A stretch of 64,000 bases of DNA from Lytechinus pictus (lineage: Eukaryota), in assembly GCF_037042905.1 (NCBI RefSeq), contig NC_087248.1:25544001-25608000 (forward strand). Reading direction: 5' to 3'. The first letter of the stretch is position 1. Each line of letters opens with the position of its first letter. Both the position numbers and the translations under genes were made by a program. The notes under the pieces are model-generated. The model was not told the origin of the DNA. It was given only the letters and a program-made list of their open reading frames with translations, and made no database searches. Below are positions 23,892 through 62,904 of the stretch, piece after piece.

Positions 23892-26800
23892 TCAAAGACG
23901 AACAAGCAAAACGCCATCACCATATGGGGATCTGCATAATAAAAAAAAAAAGAAAAGGAAATGTTTGATAAAATGAGGTCTTATGACTTACCGATCCCGT
24001 TTGCCACGTTCTATCTCCACCTTTATCCTATGTTCATCATCGGAATCAATACTAGAAGGATCTAAGCTCTCATTAGTCCCACATCTTGTGAATCTAATAA
24101 GATATATTAACATCAAGAAAATATACATTCGTCGGAATAGATTGCCTTGCGTGTTATGGGGGAGGTTTATATTGTGTGGTTGGGCTCTATGGAAAGCAAA
24201 GTAAGAACACCGGTAAAGGCGGGGACAAAACTATGGTTTGATAATGGACCTACAAGACATGAATACCCATTTGATAGATTAACGGTATGAGAGGTTAAAA
24301 TGAAAGCATATAGAACATATGATTTGCATAAAATTAAAAAGAAAATGAAATGCAAAGACAAGGTGTCGTCAATTTTAGCAAAAGAGCATCTACCCATCCA
24401 TTTCCAGCATGGCCCAGCAAAACAAACTGACCCCAAAATAAATGCAAGACAATAAATCATGCCGGTAAATTCTCGTTCGAATATTTTATGAAAGTATGTT
24501 TAACTACGTCAATACGTGCGGTCAAACATTGTACACATCAAATGGGAATTAACTCTAATCTTAATAATTGCTATATTTTTAACATGTTTAATGTCATGCT
24601 TAAACACAGTATAAGATCATACTAGACAACGCATTTGAGCTTTTTTCTATGAATAGTATTTATTTTACGGTTATACACAAAATATAGCGTTGTCCACCGA
24701 GTTGAATAAGCGTTTCTTGCTACATAGCAGTATGTGTATTCTCCATAATATAGAACCGAACATTGATTTTTTTTTTAAAGGGTGTACCTGAATCAAATCA
24801 TTGATAGATCAGAAGATGATAGAAATAAAAGAAAGATATCTCACCCCAGGATCCTCAGATTTTTTAGATCGTGTGTTGATCTGAAAGCTTGAATGATGCG
24901 TTTGGCCTGATCGTTACCGATGTTGAGATCTGTGAATGTGACCTTGACAAGCTGAGATGAGACCTTGAGGAGAGCATTGGGTAGTGAGGTGGGATCATCG
25001 TGGAGAGAATCCGGGTGAAACAGACAACGTGTTTGAATGGTGAGCTCTGTCACTGCTGGTAGATGGATCATCTGGATGACGTCACATCTGATCGTGTCCC
25101 ATACCTGTATGGTGATCCTCTTCACATTGTCAAACATCGAACCACACTCCTGCCATCTTTCTAGTGCATAATCAGTAACGGTCAGATCAGTCACAGTTGA
25201 GCTCGTGTTGCATTCATCCTACAATAGATGAAATGAACCTAAGAGATGTCAAGAGATCATGCTAGTGGAAACATGATGTATAATCATGATGTTTACCATA
25301 TGCCATCGGCTGACAATTAACAAAATAGAATAGGAGAGAGAGAAACAATATAACAAGCTAAAAACGAAAAAAAATCACATCACAAGAAAAATGCAATTCA
25401 TCAATAATCCATTTTCTTTACTATGATTGTATTTTTATCATGTTAATCATAATTTTTAGGAAACACCAAGGTTGATTCTGTATTCACTTTCCTGTACCCC
25501 ACCATACTATTTTTTATGATAAATTTACATAAACCAACATGTTCTTGCAAACACATATTTCATTTCATGAATACAAACAGAAGATCGGTAATTGCACAAC
25601 AAAATGAAATGAAACAAAAATTAGAGTAGAATCTGTAATTTAATCGAAACTGGATGTAAAGTTAGAAAGTTATGCACTAAACATTTTTATGCATACAATA
25701 CAATATGGACATACTATACAATATAAAAATACAATATGGACAGACTATCTCGTTTGCCTATTGCTATGCCGTAGCAATATGCAAACGAGATAGTCTGTCC
25801 ATATTGTATTTTTGATCGCATTTGGCAATATTTTATTTTCACAGTACAGTGACCCTTCATTAAATCAAAATAGTTCACAACAATGGAAATTTACCTTGAT
25901 CAAGAAAAAATCAAACATTATTCAACATTGTAATGAGAGAGAGAAAAAAAAAATCAAAATACAATAATGTAAGGGATGGCTTCATCAGATTCCTCATTTA
26001 CATGCCAATCACGATGTGTAGGTCTTACATAAACAATTTGTGAAATTGAACAAAGTCGTATTTGGCGTCCGATTTGGGTGGGGGGGGGGGCGATTCAGGA
26101 AAGAAGCTCGTGTTTTTTTTCTTAATTCAATGTAATTCTTCGAAGAGCAGTAAAATGAAGTGGCTTCCTTTGGTAAATAAATATATATAATCATCATCAT
26201 AGTTATTATTATTATTTATGTGCAATACGGGCTAGACATGAATGGCTGAAAAAGATAATTCATTTCTATTCCACTCCCTAGTACATATATCAGTGCAATC
26301 AAATTTAGTGGAACGAACCAAATATTCTAAGGGAGCGGACATGGCATGAGAGGCAACATTTCAACCCCCCCCCCCCCAAAAAAAAAAAAAAATAAAATAA
26401 ATAAAAATAAAATAAATGTGAGAAAGAAGACAGTGAACAAATTTATTTGCCTTTTAATTAAAAAAACATGATTTGGCTGTATTCTTTTAATCTGTAGGCC
26501 TACTCTGATGTTCACTTTCTACTATACCGGACTTCAAAACTCCATGTATAGCCTTGCTCTGTTTGAGCCGCACATGCCACTGTGTCAACTGTTGTTTGCC
26601 TATAAAAGGTGAAATCACGATATTCGTAAACGACCAACTAAACAGTCACTCAAAATCAGAATTTAAACAATGAATTGAAAAAACCGTCAAATCCGAATAT
26701 TTAGGTATACGAAAAATGATTTACAATAGGACCCTTACGTTACCACACCCTTTAAAATTGGTGTTGTTAGCGCTGAAATGAAAAAAAAAATCTATGATTT

Positions 26801-29800
26801 GATTTGAAGTAGAAGTCATCATAATGCTGATTCATCTTACAATATGTACAAAGGAACTGAGCGAGGTGACGTAATGCAGACGGACGTTCACTGGGATCAG
26901 CTTAGAAATCAAGAGTGTCTATTTGCTATAATAGTAATATCAAATGAAAGTTAAAATCACTTGTCGTAACTATGAGCATTGTAATTACATATCGTTGATC
27001 TTATTCACAAAATAATACACAGATCGGATATTTTAGTATTCATGGTATAAGAATTATTATTATTTAGATAATTGTTAAGGGTATATATTTAACATTGCAT
27101 TTTTAGGTTACCGAAAAAAAAATTATGTTTTTTTCCGCTTCATTTTCAGGAACATGATACTCGTAACAATATTAAATATATGTACACTGAAAATAATCAT
27201 TATACAATATTCAAAATACAATATCAGAATGAATAGAAATAAACAAAGAGGAAAGAACAACTCCAGTCATGGGTGGAAATCTTTCCCCAAAAGTAGGGGG
27301 ACCAGGGGCCTATCCAGGACTTTTCAAAGGGGGGGGGGACATTTCCTGCGGAAAATTTAACCAAAAAAATGTCAGGTTACTTCGTACAAAATAAATTTGA
27401 CAAGCAAAAAAAGTTATCACTTTCAGTTGGGGGGGGGGGCACACTTTGGAAAAGAAACGGTTAATGATCGATACAAATGTACTATTCATCTTTAAGTGCA
27501 GTGAGTGTTTTTTATTTGCTCTTTTTTCATGATTTTGCATTCTCAAAATGCAAAATTTCTCGCGTGCCGTGGAGCTCCGCTCCCGCGCTCAATCTAATCT
27601 AACAAGATTTTGGTCATGACAAATCCGTTAGCTTATTAAAAATGTTATAACCCTGCATCATAAGAGTATGGTTATAATACTTACACTTATGCATTTTATG
27701 AGCATAAACCAATCAAAACATTCTTTGAATACACTGACGTGACGGGAGGGGGGGGGGGGGGAGTCATACTATCTTGGCGTCTTTGTGGAAGCGGGGATAA
27801 TTTGTACAAAGATACAGGTATAGTCTCTACTTCAGGTTAAGGGTACGATGAGTTGACCAAATCAATGTCATTAAAGAAACACAGCTAGGCAAGTTAGGAC
27901 AACAATACTTAACACAAACTTTACAATTACACCCGTTTGTAGGAGAGACTACATCACATTAATTCCATAACAATTATAATAAATATTTCAAATATGAAAT
28001 TTGTTCCAAATTTTGAATGTTGCATCACCTCCCAATGCAATCTTTAAGATAATTTGAAATCTTTCCTTTCTGCAATATTCTTCTTTCAATTTTCACCATT
28101 GTTATATTTCTTCGTTCTTAGAAGTTTATATGTTTGGCTGTAATGACCAATAATCATTGCATTTATTATTACCCTTAATCTCATAATAATGATTCTCCTT
28201 TTCATTCTCATGTCACCTTTGACCAGTGAGCAAATGATATTTTTTTTCATTTAACAAAATATTGACTGTTTAATACTTATTTACTCTTTATATGTTTTTC
28301 CCTTTCTTCTGTAGTTTAATTTATTGATGTTTTACCCTTTTCACCCTCCGTAATGCTTACATCATTTTAAACGACTGAAGCAACATTAGAAGGCTTGCCC
28401 ACTACGTTCACTCGCTGAATTTCTCCCATAATTACACACCCCTTGAAATACGGTTTTTTATCATCGTTCTATTCTCCAACTATTGAAAATTTGCTCGCTC
28501 GCATTTTGATATTCATATATTTATATCCTAACGCCTTCTCTACAATATAGAGATTGAACAAAGTCATGATAGGCCTGTAACTGAAAGATGGTAGTATGTA
28601 ATGCATACAAAGTATATACAAACGTATACATTGCCCGTGATGTGATAAATTACACACCACTTGAAAAAGGTTTTTAGGAATCATTTTACAACTACTGAAA
28701 ATTTGATCGCTCGCTTCGCTCGCTCGCGTATTGATATTAATTGTAAATCATTACTTTATAGCCATGAAGACATCTTTATATGAAAGATGGTAGTATTGTG
28801 TACATATGTATCCTTATACATAGCCCTTGGTGTGAGATATCACTAAAATTTACATTTTTTTATCAATATATTGCTATATTAAATGCGGAGTCCCTCAAGG
28901 AAGCATTTTAGGCCACATTCTTTTTATGTCATACATCAATGATATGTGTACTTGTATTAACGAATCTAAATTAATTTTATATGCTGATGATGGTGTCTTG
29001 CTATATTCGGATACAAATCCCAAGATAATTGATAAAAAACTTAGTGCAGATTTGGCAAATTACATTGAATGGATGTCTGACAACAAGCTTAGTTTACACG
29101 TTGGGAAAACAGAAAGCATTTTATTTTTTTCGAAACGAAAGTTAAGATATACACACGATTTCAAGGTTTGATATAATAATCAGGTAATTGACAGAAAAGA
29201 TTCAGTGAAATATTTAGGAATTAGTATGACAAGTAACCTATCATGGACGGGTTTGGTAGACTCAATCGTCAAAAAGGCAAATTCGCGCTTGAAATTTTTG
29301 TATAGATATCAAACCTGTTTGAATATGAAGTCTAGACGTATTTTATGCTTTGCTTTAATACAATGTCTATTCGACTATGCTAATGCGGCTTGGTACGGGA
29401 GTCTGGGTGTTACGGATAAGAAAAAGCTAAGAATAATTCAAAATAAAATTGTGAGATACATAAATGTTTTAGGACCAAGAGCACATGTCGGATGTAATGA
29501 ACTTGAAAAGGCAGGATTTCTTCATGTAGATCACAGATCACAACAATTAAAATATTATATTCGGATACATTAGATCATTATATAGCAAATCATTTCACCT
29601 GTGTATCAAATATCCATAGGTACGGTACTCGAAATAGTAATTTTAATTTTGTGTTACCAAAACGTGAAGGACATATAGGGAACACTTTTTATTTCAATGG
29701 CATCCAATCTTGGAATGCTCTTCCTAATAAAGTAAAAGCAGTTAAGATATTTTCTCAATTTAAGAGTGCATTAAAGAAGCACCTAAAACTGGAAGCTACT

Positions 29801-32800
29801 CGAGAGCAATATTAACATTAAAATCAAACATTTTGTACAGTTGGTTTCTAGTATTGTGGATAATGTATACATTAGGGTATGTTAAAATATAATCTTGTTT
29901 CACATATTAGGAGGATTGTTGTTTGCTTCAGATGTTTGCATATTATTTGGCCGATGGATATGTATGTATGTATGTATGTATGTATTTTTTTTAAAACCAT
30001 ATTCCAGTACTTGTTGTAGTTTATACTTTTTGTTACAATATGTTAATGTTTTACATTAACTATAGGACCCCATTGGTAATAAGCCTTTCGGCTTTCATGG
30101 GCTATCCTGTCAAGGTATTCTTCAATTTCATTGTAATCTTGACGAATAAAATCAATCAATCAATCAATAAATCATCATCCCCCATTACTTGGACCTCATT
30201 TACGCCAGTGAAGAATCAAACTTAATACAATTTGATAAATAAAACAGAAAAAATATATAATTGTAATTATTTTTCCTGGGATATAATTCGGTTGTTGAAG
30301 ATTCAAATATCAAGCACAATTTAGAAGCTACGTTAATTGATTGAGCGAATTGGGCTACATACAAGTAGTTCATGGGGGCATTATTGATAAATTCATTTTT
30401 CGCATATTCTAAAAAATAAAAATGAAAAGAGAAAAAATTATGGAATGATTCCTGAATTTTCTTTGGTCAGGACCATTTTACTATTGACTATTTAATGACA
30501 ATTAATTTTAATAACTATTCGAGAAAAGATTCATTGCAAAGTGAAATTGGCAATTTTAGTTTATATAAGGCATCATAGCATCAAGAGACAATTTGAAGAG
30601 CATTATGGTTTCATTAAGTAATGTCCCTTTACATATAAAACCTCCTAATAACTATTACCTTTGCAGTTGATGCCATCGACAATGATGTTGAGTAGAAGAC
30701 ATCATGATACTGACCGGAGAGTGTGAGCTTCTCCAGAAGATTCGACTTACAGATGAACTGAGCGAAATCACGTGATGCAGACGGACGTTCACTGAGATTC
30801 TCACTGTGATGAAGAGTCTCAATCTGATGTAACAGTAACGTGGAAATATATTCAAAATTAATTTACATTCTTTGCAATCCAGTGTGTATTGAAATCATAT
30901 TTACCATATCAATAATTAATTTCAACAACACAATAAGACACTAATGTTGTATGGCAGTATTCATGATAAAAGATCAATGAAATAAAAAATCAACAACAAC
31001 TGAAATGTGTTTTACATTTCCTTTTGCGTGTCTCAGCATAGCATCGTTCCACAGGTATGTAGCAGAAAGCACACAGTCCCAAGAGTTAAAAGAGTAACTA
31101 ATATTCAAAATGTTAATTGCGAGGTTTTTAGCTTTCAAACAATGACGAATTACAAGCGGTTATCGTACAAAATGTAACCAATATGACTTTATCTTAACGG
31201 TTTTCATAATACATGAAAAGGAAGTGAAATAGGAGAACGAATCAATGTTGGATTATAAGTAGTAATAATTTACATTATTTTAGTCTGGTCCTTGGATCAC
31301 AATGCTTGTTTCATCAGAATAATAAACCTAATAGCCTTCATATCTTGCACCACTTTATTACCACACTGCAACTATGTTTAAATTAATGATTGGTTTAACA
31401 TACAGAATACATATACTGTTGAGCGAGATATGTATTTTGTTTATCACAATATGTCAAATGCATGTTGTATCATTGTTAATCATGTTAATACATATTCATA
31501 AGATCATGTTCTGTAATCCATGTCCGATCTTCATCAAATTGCTCCATTTTCCTTCAAAACGCTGTGGCGGCTGGGGCGGATGTGGCAGATAATGAGTTAT
31601 TCATCTTTTTTTACACCACCGTTCCACCCCAAAGAGAACGAAAATGGATCAATAATAAAATAGCCCTCCATCGGGGATGAACAGTGTTGTAAAGAAAAAA
31701 AGATGAACTCCTCGTCAGCCGCCAATCCCGCTCAAGCCGCCACAGCGAGAAAAAGGTAAATTTGCCATTAAAACCAAGGGTGAACAATTCCCTCTATAAT
31801 TTCGAAATAAAAGGCCTGGGAATCATTTTACAACTACTGAAAATTTGATTGATCGCTTCGCTCACTCGCATATTGATATTAATTGTAAATCATTACTTCA
31901 TAGCCATGAAAACATCGTTACATGAAAGATGGTAGTATTATGTTCATATACATCCTTATACATAGCCCTTGGTGTAGGGTGTTTCTAAAATTTTGATTTT
32001 TGGATCAATATATTGCTCTCAACCCCTCCACTACTTTGACCTCATTTACGCCAGTGGAGAATCAAACTTTACAATTTGATAAATAAAATAGAGAAAAAAA
32101 TGTGTTTGTGATTGTAAATGTTTTTTCATGGGATATTATTCGGTTGTTGAAGATTCAAATATCAAGTACAAAGCATATTTAGGAGCTACGTTAAATGATT
32201 GAGCTAGTCGGGCTACTTACAAATAGTTCAAGGGGGTATTATTGATAAATTCATTTTTCGCAGATTCTAAAAATAAATATGAAAAGAGAAACAATGATTC
32301 CTGAATTTTCAATGGTCAGGACCTGTTGATTAATGACTATTTAATGACAATTGATTTTAATAACAATTCAAGAAAAGATCCATTGCAAAGTGGATTTACA
32401 AATTTAGTTTATATAAGGTATTATAGCCTCATGAGACAATTTGAAGATCATTATAATTTCATTAAGTACTTTTTCTTTACATATATATACAAATCTCCAA
32501 ATAAATATTACCTTTGCAATTGATGCCATTGATAACAATGTTGAGTAGAAGTCATCATGATAATTACCACGGAGTGTGAGGTTCTTCAGATTATTCATCT
32601 TACAGATGAACTGAGCGAGATCACGTGATACAGACGGACTTTTAGTGAGATACTCATCGAGAACAAGAGTCTCAATCTGATAAAATAGTAACATGAAAAT
32701 GAATTCAAAATTATTTTACATTTCTTACACTCCAGTGTGTATTGAAATCATATTTACCATATCAATAATTGATTTCAACAACACAATAAGACACTAATGT

Positions 32801-35800
32801 TGTATGGCAGTATTCATGATAAGAGATCAATGAAATAAAAATCAACAACAACTGAAATGTGTTTTACATTTCCTTTTGCGTGTCTCAGCATAGCATCGTT
32901 CCACCGGTATGTAGCAGAAAGCACACAGTCCCAAGAGTTAAAAGAGTAACTAATATTCAAAATGTTTATTGCGAGGTTTTTAGCTTTCAAACAATGACGA
33001 ATTACAAGCGGTTTATCGTACAAAATGTAACCAATATGACTTTATCTTAACGGTTTTCATAACACATTAAAAGGAAATGAAATAGGAGAACGAATCAATG
33101 TTGGATTATAAGTAGTAATAATTTACATTATTTTAGTCTGGTCCTTGGATCACAATGCTTGTTTCATCCGAATAATAAACCTAATAGCCTTCATATCTTG
33201 CACCACTTTATTACCACACTGCAACTATGTTTAAATTAATGATTGGTTTAACATACATAATACATATACTGTTGAGCGACATATGTATTTTGTTTATCAC
33301 AATATGTCAAATGCATGTTGTATCATTGTTAATCATGTTGATACATATTAATAAGATCATCCTCAGTAATCCATGTCCGTTCTTCATCAAATTGCTCCCT
33401 TTTCCTTCAAAACGCTGTGGCGGCTGGGGCGGATGTGGCGGATAACGAGGGATTCATCTTTTTTTACACCACCGTTCCACCCCAAAGAGAACGAAATGGA
33501 TCAATAATAAAATAGCCCTCCATCGGGAATGAACAGTGTTGTAAAGAAAAAAAGATAAACTCCTCGTCAGCCGCCAATCCCGCCCCAGCCGCCACAACGG
33601 GAAAAAAGTAAATTTGCCAGTACAACCAAGGGTGAACAATTCCCTCTATAATTTCGAAATAAAAGGCCTGGAATACTTATTATTTATCCTACTTTAACGC
33701 TGTATTTTGAAGTATGTAATATTTTTAGAGGATGTATAATAATGATATTGTGTTATTTTTACAATTCATTGTGTTTCATCCGATTTGTGGTGAAATAATC
33801 GAAATAAGGATAAACAATTATTTTGTCTAGCAGTCTTGTAAACTTTTTTTTGTAAAAACTGGGGACTTAAAATAAATTCTAAGTGCCTTTAAAAGAGTGG
33901 ACATTCTCAATGACTTGTGCTGTTCACTTCAAAATCAATGGATTGGTAACAGCATCAAAACGATTCAAAGCGCATGTATAAAACATGTTGAATTTAGAAA
34001 AATATGAGCAGCATATTCAGGGATAAGGAGGCGCGATAGCTCGTCGGTAGAGCAGGGGATTCGTATTCCGGTGACCCGGGTTCGATTGCCACTTTGAGCG
34101 CTAGTGCCCTTTGGTAAGGCATCAATTCTCAGTACCAGGTCCTTCGGAGAGGACCTTAAGCCGTCGGTCCCCTGGTTGCTTAGCAATTTTTTTTTTTAGC
34201 AATCAGGTAAAAAATCACCACCAATACCAATAAAGAACGATATATAAATTAATGTTAAGAGTTATACTACTAAACCTGCCATTTTTATTAGCATTTTCAA
34301 CTAAAAATTCGTCATAGAACGTAAATTGGTGTTCAATCTGTCATAATTATTAACCGATGGAATCTAGTAAAACTTGATTCCATCTACCCCGTATCGCATA
34401 TTGACATTTATATATTTATATCCCTTCACATTTACTACAATATAGCCATCGAACATGACAGGCATGTAACTGAAAGATGGTAATATATAATGTACACCAA
34501 GTATATACACACGTATACATTGCCCGTGATGTGATAAATTACACACCTCTTTAACACGATTTTGGGGAATCATTTTACAACTACTGAAAGTTTGATTGAT
34601 TGCTTCGCTCACTCGCATATTGATATTAATTGTAAATAATTACTTCATAGCCATGAAAACATCGTTATATGAAAGATGGTAGCACTATGTTCATATACAT
34701 CCTTATACATAGCCCTTGGTGTAGGGTGTTTCTAAAATTTTGATTTTTGGATCAATATATTGCTCTCAACCCCTCCACTACTTTGACCTCATTTACGCTA
34801 GTGGTCAATCAAACTTTACAATTTGATAAATAAAAGAGAGAAAAAAATGTGTTTGTGATTGATTTTTTTTTTCATGGGATATTATTCGGTTGTTGAAGAT
34901 TCAAATATAAAGTACAAAGCATATTTAGAATCTACATTAATGATTGAGCTAGTCGGGCTACATACAAATAGTTCAAGGGGTTATTATTGATAAATTCATT
35001 TTCCGCAGATTCTAAAAATAAACATGAAAAGAGAAACAATGATTCCTGATTATTCAATGGTCAGGACCTGTTGATTAATGACTATTTAATGACAATTGAT
35101 TTTAATAACAATTCAAGAAAAGATCCATTGCAAAGTGGAATTTACAAATTTAGTTTATATAAGGTATTATAGCCTCATGATACAATTTGAAGATCATTAT
35201 AATTTCATTAAGTACTTTTTCTTTACATATACAAATCTCCAAATAAATATTACCTTTGCAATTGATGCCATCGATGACAATGTTGAGTAGAAGTCATCAT
35301 GATAATCACCACGGAGTGTGAGGTTCTTCAGATTATTCATCTTACAGATGAACTGAGCGAGATCACGTGATGCAGACGGACTTTCAGTGAGATCCTCATC
35401 GAGAACAAGAGTCTCAATCTGATAAAATAGTAAAACATCAAAATGAATTCAAAATCATTTTACAACTACTGAAAGTTTGATTGATCGCTTCGCTCACTCG
35501 CATATTGATATTAATTGTAAATAATTACTTCATAGCCATGAAAACATCGTTATATGAAAGATGGTAGCATTATGTTCATATACATCCTTATACATAGCCC
35601 TTGGTGTAGGGTGTTTCTAAAATTTTGATTTTTGGATCAATATATTGCTCTCAACCCCTCCACTACTTTGACCTCATTTACGCTAGTGGTCAATCAAACT
35701 TTACAATTTGATAAATAAAAGAGAGAAAAAAATGTGTTTGTGATTGATTTTTTTTTTCATGGGATATTATTCGGTTGTTGAAGATTCAAATATAAAGTAC

Positions 35801-37429: not shown

Positions 37430-37460
<31 letters not shown>

Positions 37461-50727: not shown

Positions 50728-50764
<37 letters not shown>

Positions 50765-53700
50765 CTGCCAGTCACATATAATGATTTCAGTAGCTTTCCA
50801 GTGCCCCTGGTGCACTTTGAATCCCACCCCCCCCCCTGCGTTCTTTCATTCTCTCATCTTATTGCTATTATTTTTGTCTTCTTTATATTTCAAAGGAAAT
50901 AAATAGAGAATAAAGCAATTTAGAACACCGTTTATCCTCTACTCTTTCGAAAATGAAAACGTCCTTGTAGTTCTTGATCTCGGCACTCCCAAACAAAAGA
51001 AAGTCATGGCGGACGCTAAAACAAATCCCTTATAAAAAGAGCAGGGAACAAATAGCCAACGCCCTGAATAAAATGAAGATTAGTGATTTCGTCAGGATGA
51101 CCTACTGCTTTTCGTATTTAGCAGTACAAAAAGCTCTTAGGAATACTGCTTTTCATATTACGACAGTAACATTTAAACAATGTAAATGTCTACTTGTTTA
51201 TTGACAAACCATGCAGGCGCTTAAGAAATGGCAAGAACGTTTTCTTCTTGAGCATGACAGCACTTTATAAAAAAAGAAATACTTCCCCTTTTTGTATACG
51301 TTTCCTGAAGGGGAGGGGTGTGGACTCCCGCCTCCTACCAACTCCAACACCCCTGTACTGTTTTAATTGAACGATTAAAAAGAAAGAGACAAAAAATGAT
51401 ACAAATTTTTCATGATTTATTTATTAATTTTGTTTTCGATTATGAAAAAACCAGAGCGATTAAAAAATGAATAAAATGGAGGAACATAATAAAACACTTT
51501 TAATTTAGATGTTACAATTTCATTAGATGAAAATAATTTACTTTCTCTCATTGTGACGAACAGTAGTCGGTAGCATGGTTATTTTGGAGGGAAAAAGAAG
51601 ATAAGAAAAATGAAACGTAGAACGAGACGAGGAGAGCGTTGGGAGGTATGATTTCAGATCCTCTATATAATTTGAAACTTATTTACACCCTTCACTCTTT
51701 GAAATTGCAACGGAAAACATATTGAATACTGGTATGTAATCTTCAGGAACAAAATTGTTTTTTTTTAATACAAACCCTAATTTATGAAAAGATACCAAAG
51801 ACGATATTTAGTGAAACGTTGAGGCCACCGTCTTGAAGCCCCAAAAAAATCACAAAATAGTTTCGGACTTTCGTTGCGCGGCATCATCATCGCACTTGCA
51901 AGGGAAAATTCGCGCTTTTTTGTTCATTCTGGAAAATAAAGGTATATGGTATGCTGTGATTTCACCCAAAACGGATTATCGTTGTAATTATACACTTTGC
52001 AAATGATCTCTCTACAAGGAGGTAAAGAGACAATTCATGAGTAGCGGGACAATAGGCAATGAAAAAAAGCACTAGAGCAGACAACAAAGCGGTATCGATC
52101 GAACCCGACCTGTCCACGCGTGCTGATTGCCCTTACGCATTTTTGTACACAGTGCCTATTGACTTGGGGGAAAAGCGAAGCTTTTACAAAATAACACGAC
52201 TTTTTCCTCATAAATTTCTTAACTATTCTGTTGATTTGAGAAGCAAAACCTGTATTTCTAGAAAGAAAAATGTCTGATCTTTCATCTTTACATTTACTAA
52301 AAATCCTGAAAACGCAGTTTTTTTTTACAACACAGTTTACTTTTTTAACAGTAGTTGTTAAGTACTTTAAATCTTGAACGACAAATTTAATTTCGATTTG
52401 ATTTGATATCACTTTATTTAAATCACAATAAAGGAAAGAAATGTACAAAGTCAATAGAAAACATAATAAAAATTAAGATAGGCCCAGGTCATGACGCATA
52501 ACTGTCGATGCAGGGCAGCAGTATAAAACTTAGTGTAAAATTTTGATGTAACAGGTACATAACATTTATTTTAAGAAAATGAAATGTGAAATAATAATAA
52601 GACAAAGTTGGGGTAAATATAAAAAAAGAGAGAAAAAGAATTATTCATACATGCACTAAGTTTACAAATATTAGGTTGGGGCCAAGCTCCAAAGCGTAAG
52701 AAAATATCCTGAATCGTTCAATCATCCATTTAATCATAAATAAATTAAGCATGTTTGTGTCAACTGTTTAACAACTCCTGAAAATTTCATAAAGTAAATA
52801 GCGTTGTAAAGATTTGATGGGGAAAAAAGAACACGGACTGCCAAGGATACTCCAGGCAGCCACACGGACCTACACGGCAGCTACACGGACCTACACGGCA
52901 GCCACACGGACCTACACGGCAGCTACACGGACCATCCCGGATGGCTTTGCCAACCCGGCAGTCCACGGATGACGCCGGATGTTTTTGACAGTCAAAAACA
53001 TCCGACGTCATCCGTGGACTGCCGGGTTGGCATAGCCATCCGGGATGGTCCGTGTGGCTGCCGTGTAGGTCCGTGTAGCTGCCGTGTAGGTCCGTGTGGC
53101 TGCCTGGAGTATCCTTGGCAGTCCGTGTTCTTTTTTCCCATCAAATCTTTACAACGCTATTTACTTTATGAACTTTTCAGTAGTTGTTAAACAGTTGACA
53201 CAAACTTGCTTAATTTATTTTTGATTAAATGGATGATTAAATAATTCAGGATACTTTCTTACGCTTTGGAGATTGGCCCCAACCTAATATTTGTAAACTT
53301 AGTGCATGTATGAATAATTATTTTTCTCCTTTTTTTCTAATATTTACCCCAACTTTGTCTGTTATTATTACTTCACATTTAATTTTTTTATATGTTATAT
53401 GTATATGTTATGTACCTGTTACATCGAAATTGTACATTAAGTTTTATACTACTGCCCTGCATCGACAGTTATGCGTCATGACCTGGGCCTATCTTAATTT
53501 TTATTATGTTTTCTATTGACTTTGTAAATTTCTTTCCTTTGTTCTGATTTCAATAAAGTGATATCAAATCAAATCAACATTAAATTTGTCGTTCAAGATT
53601 TAAAGTAGGCCTACTTAAGAACTAGTGTTAAAACAGTAAACTGTGTTGTATTAAAATAACAGCGTTTTTACTGATTAAAGAAGTTTTGAGTTTTGATATC

Positions 53701-56700
53701 TTTTTTAAAAACAACATAATATAATGTTGCGACAAGGATGAGAAAAAAAATATCAGCTCATTATTATGAGCAGATTTTCATTTGCTGTGCTGGTCAATAT
53801 AGCTGCCGTGTTGGTCCTTGAGCTGACGTGTTGGTCCGTGTAGCTGACGTGTTGGTCCGTGTTGCTGACGTGTAGGTCCGTGTTGCTGACGTGTTGGTCC
53901 GTGTTGGTCCTTGTAGCTGACGTGTTGGTCCGTGTTGCTGACGTGTTGGTCCGTGTAGCTGACGTGTTGGTCCGTGTTGCTGACGTGTAGGTCCGTGTTG
54001 CTGACGTGTTGGTCCGTGTTGACGACGTGCTCTGCCGGCATGGTCCGTGTAGATCCGTGTGAAGATGCCGTGTAGATGCCGTGTTTACAGTCATGAACGC
54101 TCAATCCGGGGCAAAACGATCCCGGACCTCCCCGGATCATGCCGGCATTGCCGTGTTGATCCGTGAGGATCCGTGTCTATATGTGACTGGGGCTTTTAGA
54201 GCAATACGTGTGATATCTAGACGCCCAATCCGTAATAATAGTAAGATAATGAAGAAGCCAAACTACGTCATCAAACAAGGGCTTGAATAATCACTATACG
54301 CTCTATTCTCCCTTCTTCACAATGGAGGCAAGCTGGACGACATTCTTTTTTTTTTACATCAATAGCCACGTCTTAACATTACGATATAAACAGAATGATA
54401 AACTGGACTAATATTTTATCATTTTGTATAGTGTATGCATGATGATGGCTGATCAACCATGTATTAACTGAAAATGTATATGTTTCAAATTGCACAATTA
54501 ACAGATGTCAATATGGAAGGCAAAATTATATCATGAATATCAGGATAACATGATAATTCCTTGTGGTTGTACTGATTAGGGGAAATTGTTATTTACTTTT
54601 CGTTTAAAAAACAAAATGAGAAGGTGAAAAGGATACCTTTGCGGATGATGCTAAGGATGATAACGTTGAATAGAACTCTTCATGAAGTGAGGGACTGGTG
54701 AATGCTAATTTATCAACGAGATGAAGTTCCCTGAGATTAGGCATCTTACAAATGAACTGAGCGAGATCACGTGATGCAGACGGACGTTGACTGAGATCAA
54801 TGTACTCGATCTCAATACACTCTATCTGGAATAATAGTGACATAATGAAGAAACTAAAATACGTCATCGAACAAGGGATTGAATGAGCCATTTTAACTAT
54901 ACATATACCCGGATTTTAATAAGTATACTGGGAAATATTTGTTTGAGGTTGGAGTGCCATTACTATATTTACCAACTAGCAATTTTGCCATTAAAACCAA
55001 TGGTGGATAATCCCCTTTATTATTTCGAAAAAAGAGGCCTGGTATATTTATTGTATTATTTTTTGTATATCCTACTCTTGATAAATTCGATAGATCTTGG
55101 TAATGTTGTGCTTGTACTCGTAATTCACGTTTGAACTTAAGGTCATTGTACTACTACGATTAATCATGAAAAATTATCACGGTGGCAGCTGTCTTTTGCA
55201 AATTAGACGTCTTTTCATCACTTGGTTTTTCTAAATTTTTAATTTTTTAGACGTCATGAAAATGCATTATGCTGAATTAAATTGTTCTGCAATTTTTTTA
55301 CACGAGATGGTTGTTTATGACAAATTTGTTAATGTTAAGTTGATTGACCTTTACCAGCTCTCCGGGGTCAAAGGTCAAAACTTATAATGCACACCAATTA
55401 TCTTTAGAATATAAAGATGCCATACAAATCAATATTAAATAACTATTTTTGCAACAAAACCATGTCTATCGTAAAACAATGATGCAAAAAGAACAATATT
55501 TTGATATTTGGCAAGTTTGGAGTTAGTTGACTAAAAACGTCTGATATCAAGACGCTTAATCTGGAATAATAGTAAGATGATGAAGCCAAACTACGTCATC
55601 AAACAAGGGTTTGAATAACCACTACACTCTTTTCTACCTTCAGCGGAATGGAGGCGAGCTGAACGCCTTCCTTTTTTTTTTACATCAATAACCATGTCTA
55701 AACATCACGTAATAAACAAAATGAAAAACTGGACTAATATTTGCCATTTTGTATAGCCTATGGATGTTAATGGCTGTATATTCAAACTTGTATTAAAGGA
55801 GAATGAAACTCTTGGAGCAAGTTAGCTTTTGTGAAAGCAGAAAAATCAAAGAATAAGATCAACAAAAGTTTGAGTTAAATAGGACCAGCAATAGAAGAGT
55901 TATGAGCATTTGAATGTCGAGATCACTAATGCTATGGAGATCCTCCCATTGGCAATGCGACCAAGATCTATTATGTCACAGATGAACAACTCTCCCCTTT
56001 TGGACACTGAAAATATACCCCAAAACATCTCTTTTTGCTCATTTTAATCATATGACAAACGATTCATCAATGATATAATGTTGTGAAACCAAGTACTTGT
56101 CCTCTCATAAAGAGAACACCTCACCTTGTGATAGACTCCATAAAAGTGAGAATATAAGTGAAATAAGTACTAAAGTAATGAGGGAGTTGTACGTGTGTGA
56201 CATCACATATCTTAGTCGCATTGCCAATAGGAGGATCTACATGGCATTAGTGATCTCAATATTCAAATGCTCATAACTTTCTTATTATTCATTCAATCTT
56301 CCTAAAACTTTCAACAATATGTTTCTTTGATTTTTCTCTCTGATATGGATTCAGCTGGTTTCAAGGGTTTCATTCTCCTTTAATATAAAGGACAAGTCCA
56401 CCCCAACAAAAAGTTGATCTGAATAAAAAGAGAAAAATCCAACACGCACAACACTGAAAATTGAAAGTTATGACATTTTAGAGTTTCGCTTAATTTCCAC
56501 AAAACAGTTATATGCACATCCTGGTCCGTATGAAAATGAGGAGACTGATGATGTCATCCACTCACTATTTATTTTGCATTTTATTATAAGAAATATGAAA
56601 TATTTTAATTTTCTCCTCATTGCCAAGTGAAACAACAATTATTTCCTCCCTGTACATGTGGAATTAGCAGTATTTAATACTATATGCTTCAGTCAAGTTG

Positions 56701-59700
56701 GTCCTTACTGTCAAATCTGCAAAAAAATGAAATTTTGTATAATTCAAACAATATAAAACAAAAGAAATAGTGAGTGAGGGACAGCATCGTCTATTTAATT
56801 TGTACATGTATGTCACTGAGTTGTGCATATCACTGTTTCGTGAAAAATAGTAAAACTTTAAAATTTCATAACTTTTTTATTTTACATCCGATTTTGATGA
56901 AAATTTCAGTGTTATGCTAGTTTGATTTTTTTTATATTTATTCAGATCAACATTTTTTTCTGAGGTGGAATTGACCTTTAAGTAATGTATATGCTTCAAA
57001 TTGCGCAATAAGCAGATGTCAAGATGGAAAGCAAAATTAAATCATGAATATCAAAATAATATGATCATTCCTTTTGGTTGTACTGATTGTGGAAATTTTA
57101 ATTTAATTAATTTATTTATTTATTTAATAAATAAATGAAATGAAAATAAAAAGAAATATGTTTGGTCACATGATGCCCTTTAAACCAATTAGCATACAGT
57201 ATTTAATTTATGTAGGATGTAATGCACACTTTTCTATCTTTAGTGGAATGGAGAAAACTTGAAAACTTGTTTGTATGTGGACATAGCCAATGCTATAACC
57301 ATATGCATAGAGCTATATAGCTCCATGCTATAACCATTTCAACTTGTCAATTAAGTAAATGTTTCAAAAACACAATGAACAGATGTCACTATAGAAGATA
57401 CAATTAAACCGATACAAGTTCGGAAGATGCTGATCATCGCTGTAGGAGTTGATCTGTGGATAAAACAAACTATTATTGCGACGTTTCAACTACACCTGTT
57501 AGTCTTAATCAGGCAATGGGGACAGTCGCCGTTTGGTTGTTATACAGTGTACTGTTCTACTATATATTATTAGTGGGATGGTAATACATCCCCCCCCCCC
57601 CGGAAATGGGATATAGTATCATCCTCCAGGATCGACGCATTTATTTATTTGTTTAAAAAGAAGGAAGCCCATTCAACAATATGTTGGTCTGCCATGGGGC
57701 CCTGTGACAATGTACATAGCATAACATAACATTTATAACAATTCATTTACATAGTAGCATCATAAGATAGGCATACATAAATTAGTAAGTACATGTGAAG
57801 AAATCTCACAACTAAAGTTGCAAGTTAAAAGCCGTCATTTAACAATACAAGCACAATGATTTAAAATAAAAACAGATGACGTTAAATTATTAAGACGTGG
57901 ATTGTTACAATTACAATTAGCCAAAATCTGTAAAATCAAGAAAGTAAGCTGAAGTTGTGAGTCGAACAAAATAACAAAATAGATGGTCGAATGTTAATTA
58001 TGAATGTAATTTCAGTACAACTCATGGGTCAAAAGTAGCTAATGCTGAATGCTTCATCAAATGATATTTAAATGATCCAAGGCTAATTTGATATCTTATT
58101 TCAGTTGGTAGGTTGGTACGTATATAGGGAAGGGCCGTCATAGCATAAATGCGCTTTACGGTATTATGTGCGACATTTAAGGAGTACTAGGCATAATTAT
58201 GCATGTAATTATGAAACAATAAAGAAATATGTTTGAAAGTTTTCATTGTTCTTCCTTAAAACCATAGCAAAATAAAGTTAACTGTCAAAGCATATTGACA
58301 CAAAACAAGCAAACGTTGTATATGTCTTGCCGATCTTAGACCCTACACTCAATATACATATTAAGAAGAGATGTACTGTCTATCAACCTATTAATTATTA
58401 ACGGATTTTTAAAAAAATATTCTGTTAGCCAACTGCGACTCCCCGTCCCTCTTTCCCCTCCGTGTGTGTATCTCTCTCCTTCTCTATCACTCTCTTTCTT
58501 TTCTCACGTATTAAATTAGGACAATTTAAAGAGTAAGCTTTGCGGCCATGCCCGCCCCAAGACTTCAATCACCAAGATAATGAGAAAAAAAGACAAACAA
58601 GGTATTGCCATTTTCTACATTGTTTTCTCACCAATTCCAAAGTTAGCTAAGAGGGTCAATTTTTTTTTTGCTTGCTCTCTTCGATTCCTTAAGACTTTTT
58701 GTTCAATACACAATGTTTTACCCCCACAATATAGGGGGTTCATCATGCCATCGGCACGAGGCTTTTGAATTTGACAAAAGTCAGCTAATATGTGATCAAG
58801 TTGATCATTGTTTATGATATCATTCAGAATAAAACATTCTTGCTGCAGATAAAAAGGGAAAAGTAAACTACTGTAAACTGCATTTGTAGTAATTATCTGC
58901 AGTATTATCCTAACAGTAAAACAACAGTGAATACATTATATTGGATGGCTCAGTTTTTTTTTATTCTAGCCTATGGGATATACGGAGGATAACAGTCCTT
59001 TGCCCAATACGCTCTCGTATTGATGCAGACCACTGATGTAGACAAAAATGTGCATTTATAATGCATCGCTAAAACATTCTATAACAATCCATATCATCAG
59101 TATTTATTAATATTGATTACAATGATTGTTGTCAAAATCATGATCAGTTATCATTATTATTACAACTAGTACTATCATCTTTAATAAGTGTCATCATAAA
59201 ATAAAGTGGATGGCACTACCACTACTTGTATTTTGGCCATTATTGTCATTGAACATGTACAAGAATCTATAACAATTTATATATTTAAGTTTATTACAGA
59301 AAGGGCCATTAAAAGTATAACAACAAAAAGTCTTGAAATTCCAAGCTTCATATTCCTTAAAGGAAAATGAAACCTTTGGAACAAGATAGCTTGTGTGAAA
59401 ACAGAAAAACCAAAGAAACAGATCAACGAAAGTTTGAGAAAAATTGGACAAATAATAAGAAAGTTATGAGCATTTAAATATTGCAATCACTAATGCTATG
59501 GAGATCCTCAAATTGGCAATGCGATAGAGATGTGTGCTGTCACTGGTGAACAACTCTCCCTATTACTTAACTATATATTTCACTCAAATTGCCTTGTTTA
59601 TAACATCTATCAGTAGATCATGTGTTCTTTCTATAGGAGGGCATGTAATACAGATTTTTAAAGAATACATCATGGATAAAGATTTGGTATCACCACAAGA

Positions 59701-61813
59701 AAAAGCAGAAAGGGACATTTTGAGGGTATTTTATAGTCAATCAAAGGGAACGTTGTTCACATGTGACATCACACATCCTTGTTGCATTGCCTATTGGAGG
59801 ATCTCCGTAGCATTAGTGATTGCAATATTCAAATGCTCATAACTTTCTCATTATTTGTCCAATTTTGCTCAAACTTTCTTTGTTCTTATTCTTTGATATT
59901 TCTGTTTCGACACAAGCCTACTTATTCCAAAGGTCAAGGCCAAGGCTTGAAAGTCTTAGGCCAATCCTTTGAAAAAAGTATGCCTCAAGGCCAAGGCCGA
60001 TTATCAACCCAATACAACACTGGCTGAAATAAATTGATTTTTTTTTGTCAAATGATATTCCTGTTTATCATTAACCAGTGATGCTAATTATCAATATTCT
60101 AAAATGTTAATTCATTGACCTCTGCCAGCTCTTGATGGTCAATGGTTAAGACTTATGATACACGAAATCTGTCTAGAATATCAGGGTACCTTGAAAGTCA
60201 ATACCAAATAGACCTTTTTTGTACTAGAACCATTTCTATTATTATGAACAAATGATGCAAAACTTCAATTGTATGATATTTCAAGGTCGTGAACATTCAG
60301 GTCATTTACCTCTAAAGGTTAGCAGAGGTCAAATCTGAAAATTTACATCTCAATTTTGAAATGGATATTATGACGAGATATAGCAATAGTGAAAGGTTAA
60401 TGCTTAAATCATTTATTTTAAATTGCTAGGATCCGATCAGTGTTTGTACAACTACGATTAATCATAAAAGATTCTCACGATGGCAGCCATTTTAATTTTT
60501 TTTTTTTGCAAATTAGACGTCTTTCTACCACTTGGATTTTATAAACTGGTACTTTGGGGTCTTCATGGAAATGCATTGTGCTGAAATTAATTGTACTGCA
60601 ATATTCTAAAAGTTTGTTGACCTTTGCCAGCTCTCCAGGGTCAAAGGTCACAAATTATAAAACACACCAATTATCTCTAGAATGTAAAGATGCCATAACA
60701 GTCAATATTAAATAGCTATTTTTCAACAAAACCATGTTTATCGCGTTATACTGATACAAAGGCACCAATATTTTGATATTTGGATTTGGGTGACTGAGAT
60801 CAATACGTGTGGTATCAAGACGCTTAATCTGGAATAATAGTAGTAACAGATGATGAAAAAAACAAAATACGTTATCCACCACTACACTCTCTTCTACCTT
60901 CAGCGGAAGAGAGTCGAGCTGGAAGACATCCCCCCCCTTCTTATTTTTAAATCGATAGTATACAAATCATGAATGTTAATGAGTGCAATGGACAGAATAT
61001 TTCATGAGGTGAAAGATGAAATGATCCATTCAACAAGGCGTAGCCGAGTTGAATTGGTCAAAGTTCATTTCACCCTTCACCAAATGAAGTATTATGTCCG
61101 TTGCACGAATGATAATAAAGTTCATTATTTGGTTTATATGACACCTACAAATATATATTTTTTAATAATGAAATTTATGAATTTCGAGGCAAAATATGCT
61201 CGGTCTGTTGATTGTCGCGTACATACAACATGCGCGCGCGCAATGGACAAAATCGTATGGATCAAAAATTGCACGGTTGATGACGTCATTGTAAAATGGG
61301 CTGAATGATTGAAATCAAACTACCAATCAAACGACAAGGATCTATCAAAGTGTCATATAACCATCGTTTAAAATTATGTTACATACAGAATGAAAGACTG
61401 GTCATTTCGTATAATGTATGCATATTGCATAGCTGCATAATCAACCTTGTATTAAGTAGAAATGTATATACAAATTGCACATTAAACAGATGTGAATATG
61501 GACAGATAGAAGGTAAAAATAACTCATGATTATCAGAATGATATGATCATCCCTTGTGGCTGTACTAATTGGGGCAAATTGTTATTTAATTTCCGTTAAA
61601 AAAATGAGAAGGTGGAAAGGATACCTTTGCAGATGGTGCTAATGATGACAACATTGAATAGAACTCTTCATGAAGTGAGGGATGTGTGTCTCCATATCCA
61701 CCACCGAGACAAAGTTCCCTGAGATTAGGCATCTTACAAATGAATTGAGCGAGATCACGTGATGTAGACAGACGTTGACTGAGATCAATGTACTTTATCT
61801 CAAGACGCACAAT
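23892..61813 (-). CDS. NLR-type (NACHT-LRR-like) gene, 3' portion; exons 61813-61625, 54825-54637, 41980-41816, 36303-36139, 35418-35254, 32676-32512, 30823-30659, 25218-24845, 24093-23992, 23931-23892(stop)
   Basis: Repeated GT-AG, phase-0 exons encode LxxLxLxxxL..SASRDLAQFICKMxxLxxLxL...FYSTLSSxASxAK. The terminal exons splice in frame to a TGA at 23892-23894. No NACHT domain is in the window, so the NLR assignment is an inference from resemblance to echinoderm NLR LRRs. Confidence 0.75.
24845..25218 (-). CDS. C-terminal LRR exon (374 nt)
   Basis: DECNTSSTVTDLTVTD...LVKVTFTDLNIGNDQAKRIIQAFRSTHDLKNLRIL; AG/GT boundaries. Confidence 0.8.
26805..26925 (-). pseudogene. Decayed LRR pseudo-exon
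   Basis: Homologous to the 165-nt exons (ERPSALRHLAQF..HYDDFY) but with indels, a mutated acceptor and no donor. Confidence 0.7.
28877..30172 (+). mobile_element. 5'-truncated CR1/L2-group LINE (RT C-half, degenerate)
   Basis: CGVPQGSILG, YADD, KYLG and WNALP motifs; one frameshift and stops; AATAAA(ATCA)n tail. The empty site is visible in the paralogous unit at ~41320 (ttgctat^catccccc). Confidence 0.9.
30659..30823 (-). CDS. LRR exon, 165-nt class
   Basis: IETLHHSENLSERPSASRDFAQFICKSNLLEKLTLSGQYHDVFYSTSLSMASTAK. Confidence 0.85.
32512..32676 (-). CDS. LRR exon, 165-nt class
   Basis: IETLVLDEYLTKSPSVSRDLAQFICKMNNLKNLTLRGNYHDDFYSTLLSMASIAK. Confidence 0.85.
34027..34228 (+). mobile_element. 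tRNA-derived SINE
   Basis: A box TAGCTCGTCGG, B box GGTTCGATTGCC and a non-tRNA body. It is absent at the paralogous site ~43885 (cagggataaagaacg). Confidence 0.8.
35254..35418 (-). CDS. LRR exon, 165-nt class (identical to 36139-36303)
   Basis: Same sequence at an 885-bp offset. Confidence 0.85.
36139..36303 (-). CDS. LRR exon, 165-nt class
   Basis: IETLVLDEDLTESPSASRDLAQFICKMNNLKNLTLRGDYHDDFYSTLSSMASIAK. Confidence 0.85.
37560..39015. mobile_element. Non-autonomous DNA element with inverted subterminal TTGGTCTAAT/ATTAGACCAA tandem repeats
   Basis: The repeat arrays face each other, and the element is absent from the paralogous unit at ~27420-27690. Confidence 0.65.
39113..39350. repeat. 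Minisatellite (CCCACAAATGTAATAA core, ~19-25 bp units)
   Basis: About 11 tandem copies. Confidence 0.9.
40271..40830. mobile_element. MITE with 8-bp TSD (hAT-like)
   Basis: TSD CAGTACAC at 40263-40270 and 40831-40838; TIRs CCCG(G)nCACTT..GTGGATACCATGCGCGACC and its inverse. Confidence 0.9.
41816..41980 (-). CDS. LRR exon, 165-nt class
   Basis: TETLRHDGNLSERPSASRDLAQFICKMNHLKNLTLDGSYHDDFYSTLASMASIAK. Confidence 0.85.
42722..43063 (-). mobile_element. LINE 3'-UTR fragment with (CTATA)n tail
   Basis: An insertion relative to the paralogous units (ttatcacaatat^gtcaaatg), with AATAAA followed by a microsatellite tail on the minus strand. Confidence 0.6.
44075..44410 (+). mobile_element. L2-type LINE 3' fragment
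   Basis: RAFAYAAQKLWNGLPYVIRSCPSVETFKLKLKTYLVK*, followed by an AGCGC...GCGCTATATAAAT 3' end. Confidence 0.8.
44481..45211 (+). mobile_element. Helentron-associated (HINE-like) non-autonomous element with internal tandem repeats
   Basis: Starts AACAAGTGGAA; internal TGACCTTTGACC repeats; (GCC)n; 3' hairpin GTCTCGC..GCGAGAC followed by AAAAA. Confidence 0.65.
45451..46395 (+). mobile_element. Second HINE-like element of the same family
   Basis: Same termini, ~125-bp internal tandem units, (GCC)n and a TCTCAC..GTGAGAC hairpin. Confidence 0.65.
46747..46808 (-). pseudogene. 3' fragment of a disrupted 189-nt LRR exon (5' remnant at ~54197-54230)
   Basis: LHEEFYSTLSFLASSA with the donor lost; it is split from its 5' part by a repeat and the foldback. 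Confidence 0.7.
47180..54195. mobile_element. Foldback (palindromic) DNA element, possibly Harbinger-like, with a ~4.6 kb nested insertion
   Basis: TIRs AAGCCCCAGTCACATATAGACACGGATC and its inverse; 21-bp subterminal repeats ACACGGACCAACACGTCAGCA; centre of symmetry at 52990. Confidence 0.85.
47745..52300. mobile_element. Insertion at TTAA with a piggyBac-like CCC left end; non-coding, with a diverged internal duplication
   Basis: TTAA|CCCTTTGCGTGCG interrupts the left foldback arm. Region 48320-50070 resembles 50840-51860. No matching right TIR was found. Confidence 0.45.
54637..54825 (-). CDS. LRR exon, 189-nt class
   Basis: IECIEIEYIDLSQRPSASRDLAQFICKMPNLRELHLVDKLAFTSPSLHEEFYSTLSSLASSAK. 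Confidence 0.85.
55530..55560 (-). pseudogene. Truncated LRR exon 5' remnant
   Basis: TTCCAG|IKRLDI.., then a break into the same repeat seen at 46810-47165. Confidence 0.55.
55797..56379. mobile_element. Kolobok-like MITE, TTAA TSD
   Basis: TTAA|AGGAGAATGAAAC...GTTTCATTCTCCT|TTAA with long imperfect TIRs. Confidence 0.8.
56389..56977. mobile_element. Kolobok-like MITE, second family (partial relative at ~18915-19200)
   Basis: AGGACAAGTCCACC...GGTGGAATTGACCT|TTAA. Confidence 0.75.
57640..58200 (-). mobile_element. LINE 3' fragment
   Basis: Minus strand encodes NLPTEIRYQISLGSFKYHLMKH, then a UTR and a (TAAA)n tail. Confidence 0.55.
59361..59934. mobile_element. Kolobok-like MITE related to 55797-56379, right tip lost
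   Basis: TTAA|AGGAAAATGAAACC; shares TIR sequence with 55797-56379. Confidence 0.7.
60791..60828 (-). pseudogene. Truncated LRR exon 5' remnant
   Basis: TTCCAG|IKRLDTTRIDLS, then a break into the same repeat. Confidence 0.6.
61625..61813 (-). CDS. LRR exon, 189-nt class
   Basis: IVRLEIKYIDLSQRLSTSRDLAQFICKMPNLRELCLGGGYGDTHPSLHEEFYSMLSSLAPSAK; CAG/GT boundaries. Confidence 0.85.
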
Positions 61814-62904
61814 CTGGAATAAAAGTGACATAATGAAGAAACAAAAATACGTCATCAAACAAGGTCTTGAATGAGCCATTATACAAATATACCAGGCTTT
61901 GAATAAGAATAGTGGGAATAATTTTTCCGAGGTTTGCTATTTTTAGCAAAAAGCAATTTTGCAATTAGAACCAAGGGTGAATAATCCTCTCTATACTTTC
62001 GAAATAAATGTCTAGAATATTTTTTTTATATTCTACTGTTTATAAGTTAGAACGATAGATCTTGGTAATCTAGTTCTTGTACTCGTAATTCATCCATTTT
62101 AATCTGAACCTGAAGCCACGCAATCATCAGTGGATCATTGATTTAGCTAGTCTGAAAAAAGGTTTTGGAAAAAAAACATACCCTAAATACGGTTGACCCC
62201 GCGATTAGCTATTGACCAGTCTCTCAAAACCACCCTTTTCTTCAAAAATCGGTGTTTTGATACCCTTAACGAGTTGCACGCGCGACCCGCCAACAAAAAC
62301 TATACACCACACTTTCAAACTCGTATTTCTTTGTGTGTGTGTGTGTCACGCATGTGTACATCAATATAATTGACAGCCCCCCCCCCCCCGGAATTAGTGG
62401 GATAATACAGCCCCCCCCCCCCCCCACCAGGTAATAGGATATATCCTATTCCTCCAGGATCGACACATACAGTTATGTATATGATTATGTTCTTCCTTAA
62501 TACCATACTAAAATAAAGTTCACTGTCAAACCATATTGACACAAACAAGTAAGCATTCTTTGATAAGTACCCGAGCGTTTTGAAAGCAGATAAATTTAGT
62601 AAATGTTGCTCATATTGTAGCTTATTTAAAGAGTTACTAAAATGGGTTAGTTCTGCTTATTAATGGTTTGTAGCTTTCGGAAAGACTAGACTATACGTTT
62701 TGAGTATCATTGAAAACGAGGTTCCGTTATTATTTTAAGATTAATGTTTCTTATTTCAATTTCGTTTATGTTTCATGTATACATAAAGTATGTTGTCTAT
62801 GCATTACACCCTACCAATGAAACAAGTATATTGTTATTGTTATGTACTATGGACATGAGTTGAATATAAAACTTTTTTTTACTAATAAAGATGAAACACG
62901 TACA

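Follow-up and report, generated by a model that had tools for sequence, protein, structure and literature searches.

The gene LOC129259254 of the sea urchin Lytechinus pictus is, with a probability that we put at about 0.85, a Death-NACHT-LRR gene whose frame-neutral LRR modules are gained and lost by duplication and deletion, resulting in germline diversification among clustered paralogues. The analysis was centred on a window of 64,000 nucleotides (C4:25544001-25608000 of L. pictus), and exon coordinates above 64000 continue the window numbering past its end. In the mechanism that we propose, exons 6 to 13 are frame-neutral modules, each encoding two ribonuclease-inhibitor-type LRRs. Because each module lies within a duplicated intron-plus-exon unit, unequal recombination, replication slippage and microhomology-mediated deletion could add or remove modules while leaving the reading frame intact. 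Transposon insertion would kill some of the modules, and the dead exons would then be copied along with their neighbors. The expected outcome is germline diversification of both LRR number and LRR surface across about 15 clustered paralogues.

LOC129259254 lies on the minus strand and has a coding span of 54.8 kb with 16 coding exons. Its product, XP_063954792.1 (P0245, 1506 aa), was found by cluster look-up and is labelled in RefSeq as 'uncharacterized protein LOC129259254 [Lytechinus pictus]'. An exon-by-exon check revealed that this protein is tiled exactly by the 16 exons with canonical splice sites, giving 1506 uninterrupted codons and 15 canonical introns. The coding exons are as follows.

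76936-76594, 74654-74338 and 73835-73675, minus strand: coding exons 1, 2 and 3 (tiling of XP_063954792.1)
73313-73054, minus strand: coding exon 4, Death (tiling and Pfam)
72589-71001, minus strand: coding exon 5, NACHT and helical domains (tiling and Pfam)
65367-65215 (L003:1215-1367), minus strand: coding exon 6, the 153-nt first LRR exon, phase 0-0 (tiling)
61625-61813, minus strand: coding exon 7, 189-nt LRR cassette of 63 aa with two LRRs, phase 0-0 (AG/GT, open frame, tiling, nhmmer E 1.8e-43)
54637-54825, minus strand: coding exon 8, 189-nt LRR cassette, phase 0-0 (splice sites, profile search, tiling)
41816-41980, minus strand: coding exon 9, 165-nt LRR cassette of 55 aa, phase 0-0 (splice sites, profile search, tiling)
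36139-36303, minus strand: coding exon 10, 165-nt LRR cassette, phase 0-0, identical in sequence to exon 11 (splice sites, unit alignment, tiling)
35254-35418, minus strand: coding exon 11, 165-nt LRR cassette, phase 0-0, identical in sequence to exon 10 (splice sites, unit alignment, tiling)
32512-32676, minus strand: coding exon 12, 165-nt LRR cassette, phase 0-0 (splice sites, tiling)
30659-30823, minus strand: coding exon 13, 165-nt LRR cassette of phase 0-0, with which the array ends (splice sites, tiling)
24845-25218, minus strand: coding exon 14, non-repeated C-terminal irregular LRR/cap region, entered in phase 0 and left in phase 2 (tblastn of P0001 and P0245, exact tiling)
23992-24093, minus strand: coding exon 15, 102 nt, phase 2-2 (tiling)
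22139-22157, minus strand: coding exon 16, 19 nt, the stop codon and the six codons before it, of which the first is shared with exon 15 (tiling)

An earlier reading of the same DNA, made from the sequence only, had called the gene NLR-like and proposed looking for NACHT and Death exons beyond position 64000. Both were located there, 9-12 kb past the end of the window, and tile one RefSeq protein together with all the other exons. The NACHT domain was recognized by Pfam in a 503-codon minus-strand ORF upstream of the window (L003:6917-8428; E 7.7e-22) as well as in the whole of XP_063954792.1 (E 3.7e-21), and it carries both a Walker A motif (GVGKT) and a Walker B motif (LVLDGLDE). The Death domain scored 27.3 bits against a cut-off of 22.6 at residues 280-357. 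The window appears to hold the sensor region, made of LRRs, of a single annotated gene of the Death-NACHT-LRR (NLR) type, for which family membership suggests a role in sensing pathogens or danger. Within this gene the cassette array is internal rather than terminal, as exons 14-16 all lie below position 26800, at which the interval of the sequence-only reading began. Exon 13 had been considered as a terminal exon on the model of the Lytechinus variegatus protein P0003, which reads through right after a cassette; this was ruled out, as P0001 and P0245 both map onward to 25218-22139.

Coding exon 3 (73835-73675; L003:9675-9835, minus strand), which precedes the Death exon, encodes LLLRSGDVESNPGP, a 2A-like D(V/I)ExNPGP ribosome-skipping motif. 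It is situated about 255 residues into the RefSeq model, behind a low-complexity N-terminal region. A 2A-like motif has been reported at the N-termini of Strongylocentrotus purpuratus NLRs (PMC4981915).

The five 165-nt and two 189-nt intact exons of phase 0-0 that had been noticed earlier were all found, on the minus strand and at the sizes claimed, through a translated search of the window with two exon peptides. All seven are open, follow a pyrimidine tract and AG acceptor, run up to a GT donor, are of phase 0-0 and have lengths divisible by three. When the seven cassettes were combined into a nucleotide profile, every one of them was recovered with E values from 1e-43 to 6e-56, which excludes chance. 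Additionally, exon 6, which lies beyond the window and was absent from the earlier count, is an eighth symmetric LRR exon. Exons 6-13 measure 153, 189, 189, 165, 165, 165, 165 and 165 nt and are all of phase 0-0. The phases of exons 1-5 are 0>1, 1>0, 0>2, 2>1 and 1>0, and those of exons 14-16 are 0>2, 2>2 and 2>0, so that skipping would shift the frame for seven of the eight non-LRR exons, the exception being exon 15 (102 nt, 2>2). Any subset of the cassettes splices in frame, as the sequence-only reading had proposed, since exons 6-13 are uniformly of phase 0-0 and exon 14 is entered in phase 0.

Pfam found no LRR in the single cassette exons (best match LRR_4, E 0.21), nor did it recognize the C-terminal tail of XP_063954792.1 as LRR. 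The exons were identified by way of the upstream ORF and a profile search, and they are assigned to LRR by their predicted fold and by homologues that pass LRR_4 or LRR_14. An AF2 model of the C-terminal 622 residues (885-1506), built with 14 homologues, reached a pLDDT of 83.7 and a pTM of 0.82 and consists of strands alternating with helices. DSSP assignment of this model places two strand-helix units in each cassette, with a strand beginning one residue after every exon border, and the solenoid carries on through exon 14. The best PDB matches of the model in a Foldseek search were NLRP9 (E 5e-12), several NLRP-containing complexes, ribonuclease inhibitor (4e-10) and NLRC4. On the predicted structure, each cassette corresponds to two ribonuclease-inhibitor-type LRRs, as in vertebrate NLRs.

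The symmetric phases raise the question of whether the cassettes are also chosen at the transcript level. On this reading, combinatorial cassette splicing would be the main working mechanism at LOC129259254, and the gene would yield many receptor isoforms that differ in their LRR subsets, perhaps from one cell to the next. In its favor, all eight LRR exons are of phase 0-0 and no other exon is, which makes cassette skipping frame-safe, and RefSeq isoforms of several relatives differ by whole cassettes. The isoforms X1-X6 of L. variegatus LOC121414341 are identical apart from missing whole cassettes (one, two or three), with X2, X3 and X4 each skipping a different single cassette; isoforms X2-X5 of L. 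variegatus LOC121414349 hold differing cassette subsets; X1 of L. pictus LOC129259246 lacks three cassettes that are present in X2; and X2 of S. purpuratus LOC115928247 lacks one 56-aa cassette. However, these isoforms are Gnomon models, and spliced reads over near-identical tandem exons can be misplaced, so that some of the differences may arise from ambiguous read placement. Moreover, RefSeq gives LOC129259254 a single model and product that includes every cassette, and duplication alone would also preserve frame neutrality. A word search of proteins for transcript-derived fragments, conducted with the five-cassette stretch of P0245, returned gene-model proteins only. The cassette-skipping isoforms of paralogues and orthologues lend support to alternative cassette use but are not proof of it. 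Judged from these relatives, combinatorial splicing at LOC129259254 is plausible, and frame neutrality may be used for cassette skipping; as the main mechanism of this gene we consider it possible but doubtful.

A broader form of this idea is that regulated or stochastic choice among the frame-neutral cassettes is routine in the Death-NACHT-LRR genes of sea urchins, perhaps with intronic read-through termination after any cassette. We regard this as improbable. If true, each of the about 15 clustered genes would give rise to a receptor repertoire with different LRR surfaces, and a transcript-level layer of innate receptor diversity would be added on top of the germline expansion. Many RefSeq models of the family (P0003, P0017, P0031 and P0246) end 1-40 residues past a cassette, having read through its donor into the intron; they were compared with window positions 30658-30632 and 61624-61598, and they miss the 165-aa C-terminal region. 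These ends represent either intronic polyadenylation or truncated gene models.

The reading that we prefer, germline gain and loss of modules, draws direct evidence from duplicated and deleted segments. The proposal that the exons are carried in duplicated intron-plus-exon units was borne out by repeat finding and unit alignments, in which several hundred bases of flanking intron are co-duplicated with the exons; modules carried in such units can be gained or lost without frame breakage. The sequence-only reading had further invoked change in exon copy number. Such change is directly visible in a tandem duplication within the array, in a paralogue with one cassette in place of seven, and in the counts of the clustered genes, which run from 1 to 13 cassettes. 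The two segments concerned are listed below.

34602-36340, no strand assigned: 885-bp tandem duplication of an intron-plus-exon unit, two copies (repeat families and alignment)
47745-62491, no strand assigned: segment of 14,747 bp missing from LOC135153834, holding both 189-nt cassettes and two decayed copies

As assembled, 34602-35455 is identical to 35487-36340 but for one base, and exons 10 and 11 are the products of this 885-bp duplication. The paralogue LOC135153834 (P0246), at a distance of 237 kb on the same contig, is 99.5-100% identical to LOC129259254 over the 5' 16 kb. Identity is still about 99.7% from 47744 to about 42.7 kb, and falls to 91-94% below that and to 82% in the C-terminal exons; the 3' parts of the two genes carry different insertions. 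The junction of the 14,747-bp absence in LOC135153834 shows a 9-nt microhomology, CTTCCTTAA. LOC135153834 has one 165-nt cassette against five in LOC129259254, and one cassette against seven in total. The near-identical tract of the two paralogues stops just upstream of the 165-nt array. In these two paralogues, different sensor arrays follow a Death-NACHT 5' half that is almost unchanged.

Sea-urchin genomes are highly heterozygous, and assembly could have produced the near-identical paralogue as well as the perfect tandem duplication. In that case the copy-number change would be partly artefactual: the 885-bp repeat would stem from a mis-join and LOC135153834 would be an alternative haplotype left uncollapsed, so that the difference between seven cassettes and one would be allelic and not paralogous. 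The single mismatch across the 885-bp duplication fits this account, as does the identity of 99.5-100% over 16 kb between loci 237 kb apart on the same contig. Against it, the 3' parts of the loci are only 82-91% identical and carry different insertions, as would be expected of paralogues that have diverged outside a recent tract of conversion or duplication, and RefSeq annotates LOC129259254 and LOC135153834 as separate genes. Furthermore, the spread of 1-13 cassettes over about 15 genes is independent of this pair, and exon number would vary even if the difference were allelic. A partly artefactual origin is considered unlikely.

Cassette number varies across the family. With a limit of E 1.4e-19, the genome was found to contain at least 107 intact cassettes, of which 106 lie in the interval 23.79-26.11 Mb of C4. 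This interval also holds 14 NACHT exons of the LOC129259254 subfamily at a threshold of 75% identity or more. When cassettes were assigned to genes by position and strand, the about 15 clustered paralogues were found to hold 12, 13, 12, 6, 8, 5, 4, 1, 8, 13, 7, 4, 1, 8 and 4 cassettes, each of these counts being a lower bound. The annotated proteins of the family contain 0-12 cassettes each. Beyond L. pictus, S. purpuratus homologues at 66-70% identity have 7-8 units of 55-58 aa. A profile of the seven peptides matched 131 proteins among 1.84 billion representatives; the best of these are from L. variegatus, with 6-7 units each, and in several of the L. variegatus matches Death and NACHT domains are present. 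The marks of birth-and-death evolution are all observed: there are recent duplicates and dead copies, and close paralogues differ in copy number.

Variation among the cassettes is concentrated at a few positions. In a set of 61 distinct cassettes of 55 aa, taken from Lytechinus proteins, positions 5-9, 36 and 38 are the only ones with an entropy above 1.5 bits. These hypervariable positions fall at or just after the two beta strands, while the framework is nearly invariant. Among the cassettes of LOC129259254, dN/dS ranges from 0.74 to 2.4, values obtained from very few substitutions. Exon divergence equals or exceeds the divergence of the flanking introns, and three of the six pairs gave p < 0.05, a nominal value uncorrected for six tests. 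Such variation fits the diversification of a binding surface, without amounting to proof. Hypervariable positions beside the beta strands, together with a dN/dS of about 1 or more, may reflect diversification of ligand specificity; the variable residues may face the ligand, and diversification would then serve recognition.

About four decayed copies had been noticed in the array by the sequence-only reading, and four were found, one of the 165 type and three of the 189 type.

26808-26921, minus strand: decayed 165-type cassette with an in-frame stop and indels (translated and profile search)
60610-60830, minus strand: decayed 189-type cassette, acceptor and about 45 nt of exon kept, then an about 240-nt dispersed repeat
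55337-55590, minus strand: decayed 189-type cassette with the same about 240-nt repeat insertion
46746-47144, minus strand: decayed 189-type cassette, the about 240-nt repeat followed by the 3' about 50 nt of the exon, donor lost

The decayed 165-type cassette is present in the paralogue LOC135153834 too, and its decay is therefore older than the duplication that separated the two genes. The three decayed 189-type cassettes are all split by one and the same dispersed repeat of about 240 nt. This repeat is found on at least 10 other contigs at 77-81% identity. After its insertion into a 189-nt cassette it was multiplied inside the C4 NLR cluster, where at least 20 such copying events took place. 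It is very unlikely that LOC129259254 is an unexpressed or dying family member whose array merely records neutral decay: four dead cassettes do lie within the gene, its introns are swollen by transposon fragments and dN/dS is near 1, but the frame of 1506 codons is unbroken over 16 exons and 15 canonical introns, and the framework residues are invariant, with variation restricted to few positions.

The gene has clear counterparts in other animals. Hoss et al. 2019 (PMC6642158) described the LRR domains of human NLRs as strictly modular by exon, with 171-bp exons of two LRRs each, a border at a fixed point of the beta-sheet, frame-preserving LRR exons, frame-shifting exons elsewhere, and alternative splicing of NLRP3. 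As in human NLRP3 and its relatives (PMC6642158), the urchin exons hold two ribonuclease-inhibitor-type repeats each, keep the frame and have the same border relative to the beta strand. Also as in human NLRs, the exons outside the LRR region shift the frame (here seven of eight), and the predicted fold matches NLRP LRR domains best. Unlike the 171-nt human exons, the urchin LRR exons measure 153, 165 and 189 nt, with repeats of about 29+26 aa and 29+34 aa. The urchin effector domain is Death rather than pyrin, and exon number ranges from 1 to 13 among close paralogues. For LOC129259254, in contrast to human NLRP3, a single isoform is annotated.

Howe et al. 2016 (PMC4852459) reported that zebrafish NLRs have a single large NACHT exon and single-exon LRR units, numbering 0-6 or more than 20 per gene; partial gene conversion was described, and the LRRs were judged not particularly variable. 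The urchin family resembles these NLR-B30.2 genes (PMC4852459) in being a large, clustered, lineage-specific expansion in which one large NACHT exon is followed by a variable number of single-exon LRR units. The near-identical tract of the two urchin paralogues likewise recalls the partial gene conversion of zebrafish, as it covers part of the gene and ends just upstream of the 165-nt array. However, the urchin gene is without a B30.2 domain, has other N-terminal domains and shows clear hypervariable cassette positions, unlike the zebrafish genes. The Death-NACHT-LRR expansion of sea urchins itself has long been known from S. purpuratus (see the summary in Roulston et al. 2016, PMC4981915), whose NLRs share with LOC129259254 both this architecture and a 2A-like D(V/I)ExNPGP motif upstream of the Death domain. 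No description of cassette exon organization or copy-number dynamics in echinoderms was found in the literature searched. Lamprey VLR and insect Dscam, in which diversity comes from the assembly of LRR modules or from exon choice, share with the urchin NLR the idea of a recognition surface made from interchangeable modules. The likeness is conceptual only, and the data gave no sign of somatic rearrangement or mutually exclusive splicing.

Fast cassette turnover is the ordinary pattern for an expanded NLR family. Its principle is already known from vertebrate NLRs (Hoss 2019; Howe 2016), and the locus by itself shows no new mechanism. Its value is that of a clean and dated case in which an innate receptor family of an invertebrate reshapes its sensor domain, with breakpoints visible down to a microhomology of 9 nt. 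The frame-neutral two-LRR exon design of vertebrate NLRs is present in echinoderms as well, and its occurrence in both groups implies that it is either old in deuterostomes or has been selected repeatedly.

Several repeats in and around the array were recorded in addition. The about 240-nt dispersed repeat is SINE- or MITE-like and occupies window positions 46950-47200, 55337-55510 and 60610-60783. Intron 13 contains, on the plus strand at 28926-29815, short ORFs with a remnant of a YADD-type reverse transcriptase (Pfam RVT_1, E 5.9e-4, below the cut-off); this remnant is a fragment of a non-LTR retrotransposon that swells the intron between the last cassette (exon 13) and the dead copy. A 21-nt minisatellite with the unit CACGTCAGCAACACGGACCAA lies at 47323-47598, with its reverse complement at 53800-54050, and a short palindromic pair related to it lies at 52855-53104. 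Minisatellite and palindromic pair are both located inside array introns and are a source of long spurious ORFs. A run of 154 N at 12462-12615, either an assembly gap or a mask, lies inside a transposon region. The final 600 bases of the window, 63400-64000, are part of an abundant dispersed repeat, for which 57 genome matches were scored at 78-100% identity, often as inverted pairs.
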